A DNA stretch of 64,000 nt from Guillardia theta CCMP2712 (Eukaryota > Protista > Cryptophyta), in the NCBI RefSeq assembly GCF_000315625.1, contig NW_005434542.1, positions 120,087 to 184,086 on the forward strand, written 5' to 3'. Below are positions 43,531 to 63,959 of this stretch, in pieces; the stretch's first letter is position 1; each line of letters opens with the position of its first letter. The notes under the pieces are model-generated. The model ran no database searches. It was not told the origin of the DNA and saw only the letters and a list, made by a program, of their open reading frames with translations. Position numbers and translations under genes: made by a program.

Positions 43531-45613
43531 ATGCCAGCAGACTTCGGAGCAAGCTCTTACGCAAGCAGGTTGACTCCTCGTACGGAGAAGGGAGGAGGGC
43601 TGGGCCTTCCAGAGCATGCGGAGGAAGAGGAGATAACAGCATCCAAGATCTTGAAACTCGCCGACTTGATCAGAACCTCGAAGAAGTGCGTGGTGCTGAC
43701 AGGCGCTGGGATCTCAACGAGTGCGGGCGTCTCTGACTTCCGAGGGCCCAATGGAGTTTGGACGGCAGAGAAGGTTGAGATGTGTCTTGAGATTGTCTTG
43801 AAGGTTGTTCGAAGTTGTTGGAAGACACGAGATGAGATGAGATGAGACGAGACGAGATGGGGTCGGCAGGGATGTGGTGTGGTGTGGTGTGATGTGATGT
43901 GCTTGGTTCATCAATTGTTGTTATGCTTTTCCTTAGAATTTGAGCAGAAAGGAATTCCTCCTCCAGCTTCGAGAAGCTTTGAGACTGTTCAGCCGACCCT
44001 GACGCATATGGCGTTGTTGGGGTTAGTGCAAGCGAAGATGGTTGATCTTGTCATCAGTCAGGTGCCTTATCCCTCCCATCCCTTACCCCTCATCCTCTCC
44101 CTCAATTCGTTCTACAAATCCCCTTCTCTCTTTCTATCTTTTCTTGTTTTGCCTGCCCCCTCGATGTTTGCTGCTTTTCTCGTGCTCATGACATCTCGTT
44201 GGTTGCTCGTAGAATGTGGATGGCCTTCATCTTCGATCGGGTCTACCTCGTGAGAACCTAGCAGAGCTACACGGCAACCTCTTCATCGAGTCCTGCGAGA
44301 TCTGCGGATGGGAGTACCTGAGAGACTTCGATGTCGGAGGAATCAGCTTTAGCAAGACAGGGAGGGAGTGCGAGCGGCCGGGCTGCGGTGGTGCCTTGCG
44401 CAACAACTTGCTGGACTGGGAGGACGCTTTGCCGGAGCAGGAGTTTCAGGCGGCTGAGGATGCCCTGCGGTCGAGCGACCTGTGCATCTGCATGGGAACT
44501 TCGCTGAGGATCCGTCCTGCCTCGGAGCTCCCGCTCATCACGGTGAAGAATGGCGGGAAGCTCGTCCTGTGCAACCTGCAGAAGACGCCCAAGGACAGGC
44601 ACGCCTGCCTCAAGGTCCACGCGCCTATCGATGAGGTCATGCGCGGGGTCATGGCGGTCCTGGGCGTTAGGATACCCAAGTTCACGAGGAGCATGTCGCT
44701 GAAGCTCTCCTGCAAGCTCGAGAGACGAAGCGGCTCTGCTGGACCCAACGACTCAAGCAACAAGGCTGTACATAAGACTGACGACTGTCAAGAAGATGTC
44801 AAAGTCAAAGAGGAAGGAACTGGTAGGGATACGGACGAGGAGAGAGCCGTTAAGGAGAAAGAAGGCGGAGAATCATCGAGCCCAGTAATAGCTCACGGCC
44901 AGTTCTCCTCCTCAGAAATGGAGGAGGAAGAATGTTGGATGCTGTCGCTGAGCAATCAACTTGGAGCCGATTGTCCCCTCCCTCTGCTGGAGGCCGTGGA
45001 GTACAGGTGTGAGACATGGGCATGGCGGTTCGCGAACCGCCATGGTGGTGTCCTAACACCCTCCCAGTGTCAACGACGTCGTCCTTGCTTCCTCCCGCGA
45101 CTCTTTTCCTCTTCAAACTTCGATCCCCAAGGTACTTCCCTCCTGCCTGAATCACTCCCCTCCTTCATGCCCGTAGCTCAGCGATCCTCTTCAGGCCCGC
45201 ATCCCAGAGTTTCCGCCCTCCTGCCTGGCTGTCAGCTTTGCGTTGAAGGAGACTTGCAACCCCAACCCTTCTGTAGTGCATGTGAGCCCAGCGGGAGACT
45301 TGGAAGAGTCTGACGAGCCGATCTTGTTAGGTAAAGCCTGAGCAGTGGGCGAAAGTCACAGAAAACTTTGACAAGGAGGCTATCAAGCTGGAGGCTTTCT
45401 GGAGTGTTGATGTGCGTAGTTGTCATGTTGAGGTGCAGTGCCTTGACACTTGCATGAAGTTTGACCTTCCAGTCGCCGACATCGATTTCGACGCCTCCGA
45501 CAATACGGCACTGGTGGAGGTAGGTGGGACAAGCTCGAAGCAAGCTGGATGACAGGTGGTTTTGTACAGTCGTTGAACGAGTCAGCAAAGAGATACGAAG
45601 AGAAGAGAGCTGA
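43531..45613 (+). CDS. SIRT6: Class IV sirtuin (SIRT6-like NAD-dependent deacylase) with C-terminal extension; end approximate
   Basis: YASRL...LGLPE; VVLTGAGISTSAGVSDFRGPNGVWT; PTLTHMAL; SQ-NVDGLHLRSG; LAELHGNLF; Zn-binding CEIC and CERPGC; LDWEDALP; GTSLRIRPA; NLQKTPKD. Confidence 0.9.
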
Positions 45614-48697: not shown

Positions 48698-51600
48698 ATG
48701 TTTCGGACACGAATCTGTTCCCTCCTCCTCTTCAGCCTTGCCCTCGTAGACTTCTTGCACCTGGAAGTGCGAGCAGAAGCTGTAGCCAACAGTTCCACAG
48801 CAACGCAAATTTATGCTGCTGGAGCAACATTCCCGGAGGAGCTGTATATGGATGCCATGTTCGCCTATCAGTTCGTCGAACCCACTGTCACCATGTCCTA
48901 CCTCCCGACAGGGTCAGGAGGCGGAAAGAAACGAATTACACAAGGGGATCAGATGAAAGACGACGGTTTCGGTCCTCCCTTCAACATTGACTTTGCTGGA
49001 TCCGACTCCTTGTTGAATGCCCAGCAGTATGCCGATTACCCAGATTTGCAGATGTACCCTTCAGTAGCAGGAGCGGTGGTTCCAATCTACAACATTCCTG
49101 AGCTCGAGGAGCGAGCCTTGGACTTGATCTTGACACCTGAGACAGTGGCCAAGATCTTCTCTGGAGCCATCAAGTGAGCAGACCTGCGCCTTGAAAGATC
49201 TCAAAGACTGACTGCTGACAGGAACTGGAACGACACAACAATCTACAACGACAACGTGGCTGGGGGCAATCAGGCTGGAGCTGACGTCCTCAAGAAGATC
49301 AAGTCGTCGATCATCGTCTTTGTGCGCAATGAGGACTCAGGGACTACAGAGATCTGGAAGAAGTCTCTCGCAGGGGCCTCGGCATACTTTGCAAAGCAGA
49401 TCGGAACCTCTTCAAAGCCTGTCTGGAACTCAACGGCCCGTTACGAGTATCGAGACGAGAATAACGGAGTTGCTTCAGGCGTCCTCGCGACCGACTACGC
49501 CGTGGGTTACTCAGTGCTGGGAGTAGCACTGAAGCTCAAGCTCAAGTCAGCCATGATCCTCAAGCCTGGGTCCACCACTCCGATCCGAGCATCAGCAGCA
49601 GCCGTTGAGTTCGCAGTGGCCGAGATGGGTCTAGGTGAGGCGTATGGGACTAGTGGCTATCGGAACTCTGACATGCGTGTGTCATGGCAGACTTCGGCAA
49701 CAACGGCGATGCTCCTGAACGTCTCACGGCCAACGTCATGAACGCCCAGGGTTCACTCGCATGGCCGATGGTGGGGTACACCTACCTGGTCATGCGCAAG
49801 AATACGCTAAGGAAGGGAGCCACTTGCGAGCATCGCAAGGCGACGGTCAACTTCTGGATATGGTTCCACAAGTCGGACGTTGCGAGGAACTTGGCTCGAG
49901 TCCATGGCTTCTCTCCGCTACCCGAGATCGTTCAAAACACAGTTTTGACCCGCCTCATGGCCGACATCAAGTGTGACGGGGTAATCGCCTACGACAACAA
50001 CAACGTCAAGATCATCGACGGGCACACGATCCCTGTTGTCTTCACCACTCTTGGGATCCTTGGTAACACGTACATCGGAGTTGATCCCTCCGTCACTTTC
50101 AACGTGAGTTGCTCGCCTGCACCGCGCGACTAATGCTGACGTGGGCGAACCAGATGTACGAAGAGGCCAAGTCCGACGAGGCCTACACCAAGATGCTGTC
50201 GCAGAGGGGAGGCTTCGCTGTGGTTCGGAGTGGGGCAAGGCAGGCGTGGACAAGCGCAAAGTCGAATCTTGTCATCCCCCTAGGTAACGCACTTCTACCA
50301 TGACATGACGAACCTCCTCTGACAACTGCTGGCCTTCAGCTGGGATCGGCTATGGGCTAATCTACAACCTCTGCGGCGATGCCACCAAGGTAGCCAAGTG
50401 CGACACAACGACTGACAAGCTGGTGGTGGACGGGAAGACGCTGGCACAGCTGCTCAAGACACAGAAACCGACCTTCGGCGTGCTCAAGACGCTGAACCCA
50501 ACGCTCAACGCCAAGCTCGTGAACCAGGAGATGTACATGATCTGTCCCGAGGTGGGATCGGAGGACAGGGCCATCATGACGGAGATCCTGTCTGCCTTCG
50601 ACCCGAGCTTCACCGAGACCTCCTGGCAGTGCCAGACCTCCCTGTCCAACTCCCCCTTCATGGGCGTGCTCGGCGAGAAGCGATTTGCCGTTGGCTTTGG
50701 CCCCCTCAACGACATCCCCTCTACCGTTGAAGTCGCCGACTTCCAGTCGTCGACCGGGAAGAAAGTCTCCTACTCCGTGGACGCCGTCCTCCGATGCGCC
50801 AAGGCTGACACCATGAACGCGTATGGGGCGTATGAGCTACCCAAGGGGTCAGTGGACGACGGCTGCTACCCGCTGTCGGAAGGGTTCAACGTGATCGCTC
50901 CCAAGGCCTTTGCATTGACCGCGCAGAAGAACCAGGACTGCGGGCCTACTGACCCGGCAATTGCTATGACCATGTTCATAGGGTGGATGTACGGGCATCC
51001 TAAGGCCGTCGGGAAGTTTACCAACGTCAACTACTCGCTCCCTCTGATCAAGGCGAACCTGGCCCCTCTGGGATTTGACAAGGACCTTAAGGCAACGAAC
51101 ATACTCAACAGCTTCTCGTGCGATAGCAAGAGCATCCTCGACCCTCCCCAGCCCGCGGCCAGCGTGACTGCCTTCATCTCTGCTGCTGCCTTTGCCTCCA
51201 TCATTCTCCTCTTCCTCTCCTCCCTCATGTGGGCGTTCAAGAGCGGGAAGCTGGACTTCGACAAGCTCGTAGCAACTATCTTTTCAGAGGAGATCTGCCT
51301 GCTGACAGACATGATCATCAACGTTTCCGACGTGATCACCTTCTCCATCTCCGTCTTCATCCTGGTGGCCAAGGAAGAGTTGCTGGTGGATCTGTTTCCC
51401 ATGTGCGTCCTCTTCATCATCCTCGGGTGGATCTCGACCCTGCACAACTTCCGGCTGACGTTGAATCACTTCCGCTACATCATCATTCAGAAGGACGCTA
51501 GCAAGAACGACGTCTTTGTCAAGAAGCACGCAGAAGCTGTCGCTAGCGCCTCCTTCGAGAAGCGGAAGCCCTCCCTGACGAGCTGGTCCAAGGTCAGCCC

Positions 51601-52051
51601 TCAAGTTCAGGCCGACGGCGAGACGCGGGAGGAGGTGTCTAGAAAGCTATCCCAGGCCTTCTCCATCATCAGGTCCAACTCGCACCAGGACGGTGGCCTT
51701 TCCCACATCGACATCATCGAGAACCTCCAGAGGGCGCGCGAGAGGCTGCGGGGAGATCTCTTCCTCATCCTCTTCGAAGCTCTTCCGACTATGGTGATTT
51801 CGATCAAGATCAACATGACTCTTCCCAGCACCTCCCTCATCAACGTCATCTCCCTCATCTTCTCCACCTCCGTCTTCGGCGCCAAGTCAGCTGGGCTCGC
51901 CTCCTACCCCGTCGTGGTGGGAGACCTGAAGAGAGAGAAGAGTCGGCTGCACAACGAGATCATTTCCAAGGTCCTGTCCGAGGTTTTTGAGCCCACGGGA
52001 CCTCAGAACGGGCAGTCTGTCGCTGTGGAGGTCGCCTCCAACGAGAACTGA
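48698..52051 (+). CDS. Signal peptide + PstS-type phosphate-binding domain + second degenerate PBP-like domain + multi-pass membrane domain
   Basis: AGATFP, YLPTGSGGG, DFAGSD, GAVVPIYNIP, AKIFSGAIK-NWND, VRNEDSGTT, AVGYS, AWPMVGYTYL. Second lobe ending CYPLS. About 5 hydrophobic helices in 51160-51900. Confidence 0.85.
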
Positions 52052-52492
52052 GGGGAGGGAGTGCGGGCGAGTGAGCGGCTGCTGGGTCAGTGAGGTGTAA
52101 GGCGACTTGGCATGGTGTAGATAAGTTTCAATGTTGTCTATCTTCATCCCAGAGCAGGACAGCAAGTCCGTCTCTGATGTGTGTTGAATGAAATATTCTT
52201 GTTTATTCAAATGACTGACAAGTCCGTAATTGTGTCTTGTTGCAAACAACCTTGTGATTGTTGCTTGGCGAAGTGAAACATCATCTTCTGTGCCACAGTA
52301 TCCCGGTACTGATCATGCTTGCGCACTGCCAGCCCGGCTCAGACTCCTCCGAGTCAGTACTTGGATGTCACACGGCCCCGCGACTCTCATGATACGGTCC
52401 GATCATCGCAGCCTCCGACCTGCTCGGCAGTCCGACTGGGCCCTGACCTGACCGTGAGCGGCCCGTCGCTGTGACATGCCATGATAACTTAA

Positions 52493-52583
52493 CTTTGATC
52501 GAGTATAGGCATGATATCTTTGATCGAGTAAAGGCATGATAGCTTTGATCGAGCAAAGGCATGAATCGAGTCAAGGCATGATA
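52493..52583. repeat. 25-bp tandem repeat x3.7 in an upstream intergenic region
   Basis: CTTTGATCGAGTATAGGCATGATAT / CTTTGATCGAGTAAAGGCATGATAG / CTTTGATCGAGCAAAGGCATGA / ATCGAGTCAAGGCATGATA. Confidence 0.85.
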
Positions 52584-60987: not shown

Positions 60988-62216
60988 GCGCCCGCGCTCG
61001 GGGTCGGACGTCCGCGTCGGAGTAGATGAAACGTCTCGTCAAACATTGAGAGGCATGTAGGGGGATGAGGGCGATAAAACTTTCCGCCGCTCATGCCATG
61101 CCATGCCATGATGGCCGACTACGCCGTGACTCGGACTACAATCAACCGGGGGGCGACCGGCGCGGAGCGGCCCGCGGCGGGCTCCGGGTCTCCGATGATC
61201 ACTGAGTGCTAGAGTGCACTTTCTGTCGGCGATGAACTTGAAATTTCGGGTCGCGCCGGGCCCCCCCGGGCACGCGCCGTTGCCAAGTTGGCGGGCTAGG
61301 CCCGGCGGCGGCGGCAGTGAATCATCAGGACAGTCCTAGTCACGCCCGGCCGGTCCGAGACCCGGCCGGGCCCGGTCCCGAGTCCGCCGCTCTCAGCAGA
61401 GTCACGGCGCCCGTGACTCGGATGCTTTCAAGCCTGTTTAAAAATCAGTCGGGGAGGACGGATTGAATCACCGGGAGAGTAGAGGAGGCTTGACCCTAAC
61501 CGTGTGACTGCCGCACAGGCCATACGGAGAGAAGAGAAAAAGAAACTTCTAGTAGCGGCGAGAATCAACCCACTTCCGCGGAACTTGATGCGGCGGCCAC
61601 TGGCACTGAGGCGGTGGCAGCGCCCGGCGGAAGGACAGGGAGGCCTTGAGAGACGTCTTGCGAGGCCGAGAGACCATCCAGCGCTGCCGTTTCGTTCATT
61701 GTTCGCCGAGCGATCCGGCGCCAGCCACCGGCGGACAGAAACCGTGACTGACTCGTGACACTGGCAAGTGACTGAGTGACGTCCTGCCATGATTCGGTGC
61801 GCCAGGGGCGGGCCTGAAAGGATTTTTCAACTAAAAAAAATGATGATAACCGGGGTAGGGTTCAGACAAAATAGAGGACTGAATTCCTCTACTACATGAA
61901 AGTTAGGAGCGAAATGTTATAGTGCCACTCTAAGCTGAAATGGCCAAGTGGTTATGATGAGGACTACAGGTGTGGGGTCACATCCAAAGAGCAACAAAAG
62001 GAAGGAGGGGTAGTGTAATGACCACGACTGTTGCTCGACGATTAGCCTGATGGCGAGAAATCGCACCCGGTGACGAAGAAGGAGAGCAGGAGGACAAGAG
62101 GGAGGCAGTGTTTGCTTGCTACTGAGAGAGTTGCTGCTGGTGTGTGATCCAGTAGAGAGGAACAAAGACAAGCAGCAACGTGTTTGCTCGCGGAGCAAAC
62201 ACGTTGCGGTCTGAAG

Positions 62217-63959
62217 ATGGACGTACTGGACATCAACCCTGACTTTCGCACCGGGCATACCCCGCTGTCTCTCCAACGTAAGTCAAGTATTCAGCGAGAA
62301 GTGGAACGCTCAGATTCTTCAATAACAGCTGCGCCTACTATAAGTCCACCAGGAGCTTTGTTTCGACATCATGTCATCATCAACATGTCCTGTCCCACTC
62401 CGGCCGCAAGGATCTTTTACACTCTGGACGGGACCGAGCCGGGAACACAGTCGGCCCTCTATTGCGAGCCCATACTCCTTGAAGCGCCAGGAGCAACTCT
62501 AGTGATGGCATGTGCCATCAAGGCAGGACGCTACGTCAGTCAAACCTCCAAAGCCTTGTTTTCAAGAATCCAAGAGAGGCCTCAGTCGGTGAACGAAAGT
62601 CGAAGAGAGAAGGTGCCGCTCCTCCCTCGTCCAGCGACATCCATGGGGAACCCTACCCACGAATTCGCATTAGATCTGCGAGTGCACTCCCCGTCTGATC
62701 AACTTTGCCATGGAACCTCGAGCGGTGTTGCAGGAAGGAAACCACTGTCAGTTCGTTACCGAAAATTTTCTACAAGGAATAGCAACCATGAACTTAGAAA
62801 TGCTTTATCCTCATATCAATCCATATCAGATGGTTTTTTGACAAGACATCGAAGCTTGATGTACGCCCGTATGAAACAAGGCAATGACGAAGAGGTGAAG
62901 AGGACATTCGAAGATAATTTTGACTGCACAACACTGGAAACTCGTCTTGGTGACCATGTGGGAATGACCTCCTCTGATAGGCCAAGGGAATGGAGACTCA
63001 GACAACCAACAATAACATTCGCTGAGAGCAATCTGAAAAAGGAAACATCCTCAGAGCTCGATCTGAGTGCGAACGATATGAAAACTTTGCCAATCCTTCT
63101 ATGGGACGATGACGCTTTCGAGTCAGATGGAAGCAGCGATCAAGAGCATGACTTGACAAGAAAGTCAATGGCTAACATACCGATACAAACAGCCACCGAA
63201 TCTGCAAGTTATGGTTGGACTGAAATGCCTGACAAACAGAATGGGGAAAATAAAACAGAAGGCAATTTTGATGCTCATCATTTTGGAGAACTCGTAGAAA
63301 ACGGTAAGCTTGCACATTCGAAAGGCAACCTGAACAAAGCAGACAGCAAGGGAGATACGTCTGAACGAGAAGTCAAAACACTATACGCTAGTGGATCTGA
63401 CGTTGTCTCAGTGGATATAATGAATGAAAAATACGTCGACAGAAAGGAAAACATGATGCAGGACCAAGTTCAAAACTTAAATCATCTTGATCATCAACAG
63501 TTTCAGACTTTACGTCCAACAAAACACAAAGATGCACAGCATGAAAAAGTCACGAATGATATCACTCTTGAACCAATCAAAGAAGAAACACTATGTGAAG
63601 CAAAGTCTGATGTCGGAGACAATCATGAATTGCAATCAGATCCAAAACCACCTTCCAAAACATACCAATTCAACATCAAATCAAACTCCATACACAAGCC
63701 CGAAAAACAGTCAAAAATGAACGAAATAGGCGAAGAAATCAACAGGGAGGAGGAGGCCGGTACAGGCGCGGCCCCAGGCGGGGACGACGGAGGGGCAGAA
63801 GCAGGCGGCAGCGGGCAAGAGGAGGGCGGAGCGGAGGCGGGAGGAGAGCCGCCGCAGCAGGCGCCTGACGACGGGGCAGGGGCAGGGCAGGAGGGCGGGG
63901 AGGGCGGGGAGGGCGGGGAGGGCAGCAGCAGGGAGGAGGAGGCCGGATCATCTTGCTGA
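62217..63959 (+). CDS. Protein with an N-terminal Fn3-associated/chitobiase-C-like Ig domain and a long disordered tail
   Basis: APTISPPG...INMSCPTPAARIFYTLDGTEP...LYCEPILL...LVMACAIKAG. Confidence 0.7.
   Translation: MDVLDINPDFRTGHTPLSLQRKSSIQREVERSDSSITAAPTISPPGALFRHHVIINMSCPTPAARIFYTLDGTEPGTQSALYCEPILLEAPGATLVMACAIKAGRYVSQTSKALFSRIQERPQSVNESRREKVPLLPRPATSMGNPTHEFALDLRVHSPSDQLCHGTSSGVAGRKPLSVRYRKFSTRNSNHELRNALSSYQSISDGFLTRHRSLMYARMKQGNDEEVKRTFEDNFDCTTLETRLGDHVGMTSSDRPREWRLRQPTITFAESNLKKETSSELDLSANDMKTLPILLWDDDAFESDGSSDQEHDLTRKSMANIPIQTATESASYGWTEMPDKQNGENKTEGNFDAHHFGELVENGKLAHSKGNLNKADSKGDTSEREVKTLYASGSDVVSVDIMNEKYVDRKENMMQDQVQNLNHLDHQQFQTLRPTKHKDAQHEKVTNDITLEPIKEETLCEAKSDVGDNHELQSDPKPPSKTYQFNIKSNSIHKPEKQSKMNEIGEEINREEEAGTGAAPGGDDGGAEAGGSGQEEGGAEAGGEPPQQAPDDGAGAGQEGGEGGEGGEGSSREEEAGSSC

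Follow-up and report, generated by a model that had tools for sequence, protein, structure and literature searches.

A eukaryotic gene joining a tandem PstS ectodomain to a five-helix membrane module is a candidate phosphate receptor of Guillardia theta

We analysed a 64,000-nucleotide stretch of the genome of the cryptophyte alga Guillardia theta CCMP2712 (contig NW_005434542.1, positions 120,087 to 184,086 of the forward strand; hereafter the window), in which a single gene joins two domains with the fold of the bacterial phosphate-binding protein PstS to a membrane module of five helices. An earlier reading made from the letters of the DNA (the sequence-only reading) had pointed to an intron-containing gene with a PstS domain fused to a multi-pass membrane part. 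The introns were borne out: the gene has four of the GT-AG type, each of 48-56 nucleotides, which keep the frame, and no in-frame stop was met from the ATG at 48698. Along the protein, a signal peptide is followed by a first PstS domain (D1), a second PstS-fold domain (D2) and the five membrane helices. Cryptophyte bipartite plastid leaders usually have an aromatic residue after the cleavage site; here the predicted cleavage site is followed by Glu, and plastid targeting was set aside on this ground.

Sequence searches and structure predictions were run exon by exon (48698-49171, 49223-49633, 49693-50103, 50154-50282 and 50342-52048), and the joined translation was used solely for residue numbering, hydropathy and local alignment. 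The protein libraries were searched without the proteins annotated from the gene's own genome. When the gene was compared with its closest paralog, on another contig (C71), the exons were 72-84% identical at the DNA level, exons 1-4 being free of gaps and exon 5 having 14 gap columns, whereas the introns were 46-65% identical with indels in three of the four, and GT..AG was retained at all four. Judged by this comparison, the introns are real and the exon boundaries are confirmed. The junction between D1 and D2 falls within exon 3, where the match to the PstS family TIGR00975 stops at about residue 383 and the first strand of D2 (residues ~402-434) follows in the same exon. D2 is then spread over exons 3, 4 and 5, with exons 3 and 4 separated by just 50 bases, and the junction between D2 and the membrane part lies within the single open frame of exon 5. 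As both domain junctions fall within exons, the PstS and membrane parts are not separate genes, and the order of parts is the same in three paralogs. The ratio of nonsynonymous to synonymous substitution rates (dN/dS) against the C71 paralog was 0.135 over exon 5 as a whole; for D2 alone it was 0.095, and across the membrane part it ranged from 0.12 to 0.24. With values under 0.25 in every tested part of exon 5, the gene is, on this measure, under purifying selection. The only close database relative is a fragmentary protein of Hanusia phi (P0001), which covers exon 4, the joint of exons 4 and 5, and the complete membrane part.

D1 carries an intact phosphate site. TIGR00975 matched the first three exons in collinear order (profile positions 2-109, 129-230 and 237-309) with E-values of 1.4e-14, 4.4e-10 and 4e-5 when the exons were searched singly, and PF12849 matched exon 1 at 41.4 bits against a cut-off of 27. 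The motifs ATFP, GSGGG, GSD and R..DSGT, already picked out by the sequence-only reading, are all present and in register with Escherichia coli PstS, as GATFP (residues 42-46), GSGGG (72-76), AGSD (100-103) and RNEDSGT (194-200). Using the K-12 record of E. coli PstS as reference, together with PDB PstS alignments, Thr44, Phe45, Ser73, Asp103, Arg194, Ser198, Gly199 and Thr200 of D1 correspond to Thr10, Phe11, Ser38, Asp56, Arg135, Ser139, Gly140 and Thr141. Among these, Asp56 is the residue that selects phosphate over sulfate. The one change, the D-to-E substitution recognised earlier in RNEDSGT, concerns Asp137, the partner of Arg135, which is Glu196 here; the other ligands are identical. 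D1 shares with bacterial PstS (E. coli, PDB 1IXH) both the fold family and all eight phosphate-ligand residues; as such, it looks competent for phosphate and would presumably bind it.

D2 shares the PstS fold as well. A profile of D2 and its relatives (A3) matched PstS crystal structures in the PDB at E-values of 6e-20 to 1e-16. The AlphaFold model of the exon-5 part of D2 had a pLDDT of 87.6 and a pTM of 0.83, and the best Foldseek matches of this model were all PstS, with E of ~1e-7 and probability 1.00. D2 had been taken for a second lobe lacking the motifs. While its ligand positions are indeed replaced, D2 is a complete second PstS-fold domain and not a lobe of D1. Its ligand columns read T, I, E, F, P, V, S, E and D, and Ser139 alone is retained among the side-chain ligands; since the ligand positions are replaced, the anion site of D2 is gone. 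Eight Cys of D2 are common to the Hanusia homologue, and these conserved Cys would fit an extracellular, disulfide-bonded domain. In contrast with PstS of the bacterial PstSCAB importer, which is a free periplasmic protein, the PstS domains here stand in tandem, with the second site lost, and are fused to a membrane module.

About five membrane helices had been expected after the PstS part, and both hydropathy and the AlphaFold model gave five. The model of residues 745-1047, built with a 33-sequence alignment (A2), had a pLDDT of 86.7 and a pTM of 0.76. In this model, helices 3 and 4 are ~39 residues long each and reach into the cytoplasm, and the linker of the cytoplasmic hairpin between them falls to a pLDDT of 60-69. 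Across A2, Pro831 is invariant, Trp841, Pro960 and Gly991 are found in at least 90% of the sequences, and most members have an acidic residue two or three places ahead of the helix 4 proline. The loop with KRKPSLTSWS, described from the sequence as Ser/Arg-rich, connects helices 3 and 4 and has many Lys, Arg and Ser residues. The helix 3-4 loop comprises 100 residues with 18 Lys and Arg, and the NxS/T sites are confined to the predicted outside; this pattern of charges and glycosylation sites fits a topology with the N-terminus outside and the C-terminus inside. In the loop (window positions 51626-51670), an IRSNS motif is retained in the Hanusia protein and reads IRTNS in the C71 paralog, and the basic KRKPS stretch is retained too. 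IRSNS/IRTNS and KRKPS are candidate basophilic-kinase sites. Coordinates of all parts are collected in Table 1.

Table 1. Parts of the tandem-PstS gene in the window (residue numbers refer to the joined translation)
Feature	Position	Strand	Basis
Whole coding region, 5 exons, 1047 codons + TGA	48698..52051	+	frame-keeping GT-AG model; contrast with paralog C71; order of parts in paralogs
Exons	48698-49173, 49222-49634, 49691-50103, 50154-50283, 50340-52051	+	GT-AG model
Predicted signal peptide, residues 1 to ~27	48698..48778	+	basic start, hydrophobic core, VRA-EA (putative cleavage site); hydropathy peak at residues 6-24
D1, PstS domain, residues ~34-385; exons 1, 2 and most of 3	48797..49956	+	TIGR00975, PF12849, PDB PstS alignments, ligand columns
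D2, PstS-fold domain, residues ~402-744; end of exon 3, exon 4, start of exon 5	50005..51139	+	profile A3, AlphaFold, Foldseek, ligand columns
Membrane helix 1, residues 753-778, then a short juxtamembrane helix	51164..51241	+	hydropathy, model
Membrane helices 2 and 3, residues 794-820 and 824-862; D808, P831, W841 conserved	51287..51493	+	model, alignment A2
Cytoplasmic loop, residues 863-932; two helices and a Lys/Arg/Ser-rich linker with KRKPSLTSWS	51494..51703	+	model, Lys + Arg count, alignments
Membrane helices 4 and 5, residues 933-971 and 977-997; E957-x-x-P960, G991-x-K993 conserved	51704..51898	+	model, alignment A2
Cytoplasmic tail with conserved helix, residues 1000-1027	51899..52048	+	model helix 256-283; conservation in Hanusia

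An exhaustive HMMER search with a profile of exon 5 returned 66 proteins, which fell into two groups. In the first, the membrane module is all that ~50 proteins have in common with the window protein; those that are complete measure 450-620 residues, including a signal peptide and an ectodomain of ~170 residues that is unrelated. Those with a named source are from Geminigera cryophila, a cryptophyte, and Partenskyella glossopodia, a chlorarachniophyte, the others from uncultured marine eukaryotes. The module of the window gene is 17-27% identical to theirs, and the local profile E-values against complete members are ~1e-60 to 1e-90. By the conserved Pro, Trp, acid-x-x-Pro and Gly-x-Lys, the window gene belongs to this unnamed family of five-helix modules. 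As the conserved ectodomain of most members is a different one, the module partners outside binding domains in general. The two architectures share the five helices, the conserved Pro, Trp, Pro and Gly and the acid-x-x-Pro helix, but the ectodomain of the siblings is unrelated to PstS, their loops do not have the IRSNS and KRKPS sites, and in the Guillardia theta genome the module occurs with PstS only.

The ectodomain of these siblings has a pattern of its own. In P0003-P0008 and ~40 other proteins (alignment A4, numbered as in P0005:19-195), H84-x-N86-x-H88-S-C90, C97-T-P-F, H110, H142, R144 and D161 are invariant, and these residues suggest that the Cys- and His-rich domain may bind metal. 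No Pfam family, PDB sequence relative or Atlas relative was found for it.

The second group comprises large proteins that match through D2 and have a D1 (PBP_like_2) ahead of it, five of them with a 7tm_3 class C G-protein-coupled receptor (GPCR) domain behind. Since the best match lies in the second domain in ten of eleven proteins of this group, the D1-D2 tandem is an old cassette. The phosphate ligands are kept in P0043 (Hondaea, GBG31271.1), P0047 and P0053, and P0047 is encoded by one open frame on a single 4.1-kb contig. One of the five GPCR-type proteins, P0038 (1077 residues, from an uncultured eukaryote), does not have the tandem; a single D2-like PBP/PstS domain is followed by 7tm_3 and RGS, and by its predicted domains P0038 combines a GPCR with a G-protein regulator of its own. 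The combination of PBP_like_2 and 7tm_3 has been noted, as architecture only, in the chytrid Spizellomyces (PMC3251606) and in Plasmodiophora (PMC4815078). While these protist class C GPCR-like proteins have a homologous D1-D2 tandem ectodomain, with the phosphate ligands kept in several, their membrane part is 7tm_3, in contrast with the five-helix module here. The window protein thus has the binding-protein (flytrap) ectodomain of a class C GPCR and not its seven-helix 7tm_3 domain; as the membrane part consists of five helices with no 7tm_3 match, coupling to G proteins cannot be assumed. The literature search found no paper on a fusion of PstS to this five-helix module. The kind of protein, a binding-protein ectodomain on a membrane receptor, is known; the tandem PstS with the module, and the module itself, appear to be undescribed.

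The searched genome comprised 87,145,349 bases in 669 contigs. Three paralogs were found on other contigs (C71, 86% identity; C11, ~50%; C130, ~35%), in which the order of D1, D2 and module is kept and the phosphate motifs are retained, the sole exception being the Ser38 motif, which was not found in C11. These four PstS fusions, on four contigs, are the only genes of the genome in which the module was found. The sequence-only reading had seen no PstABC genes in the window, and the genome as a whole likewise has no Pst permease: a search for pstC, positive in 14 of 14 control genomes, found none. Four further PstS-like loci were found, on C12 (L025:3712-6459), C305 (L024:2209-4833), C69 (L026:3745-5712) and C54 (L027:3164-5211), each lying in a gene that encodes a single membrane helix and a kinase domain; those at C12 and C305 also encode a guanylate-cyclase domain. 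As in the window gene, receptor guanylate cyclases couple an outside binding-protein domain through the membrane, but their kinase and cyclase domains are both absent from the window gene.

Nothing related to phosphate was found in the neighbouring frames of the window. A forward-strand frame at 44216-45313 matched Sir2 (E 5e-10), and another at 62184-63959 matched chitobiase C-terminal/Fn3-associated domains (E 3e-11). When flanking repeats were sought, the only one found was 3' of the gene, at 52490-52581, where four tandem copies of a 25-nucleotide unit, 68-100% identical to the first copy, begin ~440 nucleotides past the stop codon.

We then compared the fold of the module with known structures. 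Foldseek gave no match in the PDB at E up to 0.001, all matches having E above 0.7. A wide VIA search, in which a Z of ~13 is the level common for helical bundles by chance, was led by Erf2/DHHC (Z 11.9 over 107 residues) and then designed bundles; both were rejected as the fold of the module and taken as generic four-helix packing. In the ESM Atlas, the search by shape reached a TM-score of at most 0.36, and the search by features reached at most 0.87, with unnamed clusters. A weak resemblance to membrane proteins of the MotA/ExbB/TolQ type was also below the noise level.

The helix with FEALPTMVISI had been likened loosely to the E-x-x-P helix of XK-type membrane proteins. Several weak hints lie in this direction. 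With scores lower than helical bundles would reach by chance, VIA aligned the module with Xkr4 (9boj) at Z 9.6 over 152 residues and with XKR9 (7p16) at Z 9.4 over 142 residues, with a root-mean-square deviation of 3.3-3.5. PF09815 (XK-related) is the Pfam family matched by the largest number of module relatives, 3 of 33, with a best E of 0.015 and 14-15 bits against a cut-off of 24.8. In the two relatives inspected, both below threshold, the helix 4-5 region fell on PF09815 positions ~126-169, and the structural alignment to XK suggests the same register. In the Atlas feature search, a cluster with XK members stood at rank 15 with a score of 0.81. The putative likeness consists of two membrane hairpins around a cytoplasmic hairpin, which align with the N-terminal half of XK; the XK-related proteins, which are lipid scramblases, have eight helices and two hairpins, in contrast with the five helices of the module. 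The window protein itself did not match PF09815, the family profile of the module against PDB sequences retrieved coiled-coil noise and no XK chain, and a PF09815 search of the genome, made without a positive control, found none. As such, the earlier comparison survives as weak hints in a single register, and kinship with XK is a lead rather than membership, one we hold to be possible but doubtful.

We read the gene as encoding a receptor-type protein for phosphate at the cell surface, and put the probability of this reading at about one half. We infer the binding of phosphate, the surface location and all of the signalling steps. After removal of the signal peptide, D1 would face outward and close on orthophosphate as bacterial PstS does. 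D2, rich in disulfides and with its site destroyed, would stand between D1 and the membrane as a rigid relay or pairing domain, and helix 1 would lead to a four-helix bundle that holds the buried Asp808, Glu957-x-x-Pro960 and Lys993. The long helices 3 and 4 would bear the cytoplasmic helical hairpin with its basic, Ser-rich linker. Phosphate in D1 would shift D2 and helix 1 so that the bundle and the cytoplasmic hairpin are reset, which may change a cytoplasmic output, such as partner binding or phosphorylation. The receptor reading is favoured because the D1-D2 cassette sits on GPCR-type proteins elsewhere, because PstS-like ectodomains recur on kinase-cyclase receptors in the same genome, and because the module has a second, unrelated ectodomain partner. 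It is also favoured because the genome has no Pst permease and because the ligand set of D1 is intact, in the paralogs too except for the Ser38 motif in C11. Of the proposal that the protein is a single-chain phosphate sensor or gated membrane protein, the anatomy, an outside PstS domain fused to a multi-pass membrane part, stood, and the sensing or gating is put forward here as a putative role.

Several points weigh against a receptor. No recognisable output domain was seen, and the module has neither a solved relative by sequence nor a clear fold match; Pfam gave no match on exon 5 at E up to 1, nor on residues 745-1047 at E up to 10. The change of Asp137 to Glu in D1 might alter the affinity for phosphate. 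Support from RNA comes down to a single run with four reads, in exons 2, 3 and 5, none of which crosses a splice junction. The four best-matching sequencing runs had been considered as RNA support and were rejected, as they proved to be DNA whose contigs continue through the introns. Moreover, the buried charges and conserved prolines would be no less at home in a channel or carrier, and the module, obscure as it is, could do no more than anchor the protein.

In the first rival, the protein is a tethered scavenger: D1 would capture scarce phosphate and hand it to ordinary carriers or to endocytosis, and the module would be an anchor and sorting device. A precedent is the phytotransferrin of diatoms, which is membrane-anchored, binds iron and is taken up by endocytosis. 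The PstS site of D1 is of the high-affinity type, there is no Pst permease in the genome for it to serve, and the gene has four paralogous copies; furthermore, with the His-rich, possibly metal-binding ectodomain of the siblings on the same module, nutrient capture could be a common theme. However, a plain anchor would have no need of five helices in which Pro, Trp and Gly are nearly invariant and buried charges persist in distant lineages, and the D1-D2 tandem is also used on 7tm_3 receptors. We consider the scavenger unlikely. In the second rival, a phosphate-gated channel or carrier (transceptor), several modules would come together to form a pore or carrier, with D1 governing its opening. 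Membrane helices 2, 4 and 5 contain, respectively, a conserved Asp, the acid-x-x-Pro and a Lys, the long helices that enter the cytoplasm in the model resemble the stalks of oligomeric channels, and the weak likenesses to MotA/ExbB/TolQ-type and XK-type proteins point the same way. These fold matches, however, are all below the noise of helical bundles, with Foldseek E above 0.7 and VIA Z at most 11.9, and the occurrence of the module with an unrelated ectodomain speaks against a phosphate-specific path, so that a gated pore or carrier seems to us rather improbable. Finally, that the PstS and membrane parts are separate genes, or the locus a decaying copy, is very hard to credit: although exon 4 starts with ATG, the Hanusia protein starts with Met just inside the equivalent of exon 4 and no junction reads were found, that Met does not align with the exon 4 ATG, a start there would leave no signal peptide despite the eight conserved Cys of D2, and the splitting of D2 over three exons with its first strand beside the end of D1, the 50-base gap, the order kept by four paralogs on four contigs, the low dN/dS and the absence of in-frame stops all stand against it.

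Phosphate limits growth over large areas of the ocean, and to our knowledge it is not known how eukaryotic phytoplankton perceive phosphate outside the cell. Eukaryotic phosphate sensors known so far are either carriers with a second role as receptors or internal systems of SPX and inositol phosphates. In the protein described here, a highly selective binding domain whose chemistry is known is joined directly to a membrane module. PstS-like domains on the five-helix module, on kinase-cyclase receptors and on GPCR-type domains are clonable candidates in which one ligand would have several outputs. The module, whose family is uncharacterised, has a confidently predicted structure and a second, unrelated ectodomain partner, and is thus a candidate new class of receptor or transceptor. 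More speculatively, and with the odds clearly against it, the module may be a new membrane transducer of marine protists with interchangeable nutrient-binding ectodomains, maybe derived from half of the XK scramblase fold, in which case the gene family would be the alga's sensor of outside phosphate and found a new receptor or transceptor class. Taken all together, the gene is a testable candidate for the sensing or capture of phosphate by a marine alga.

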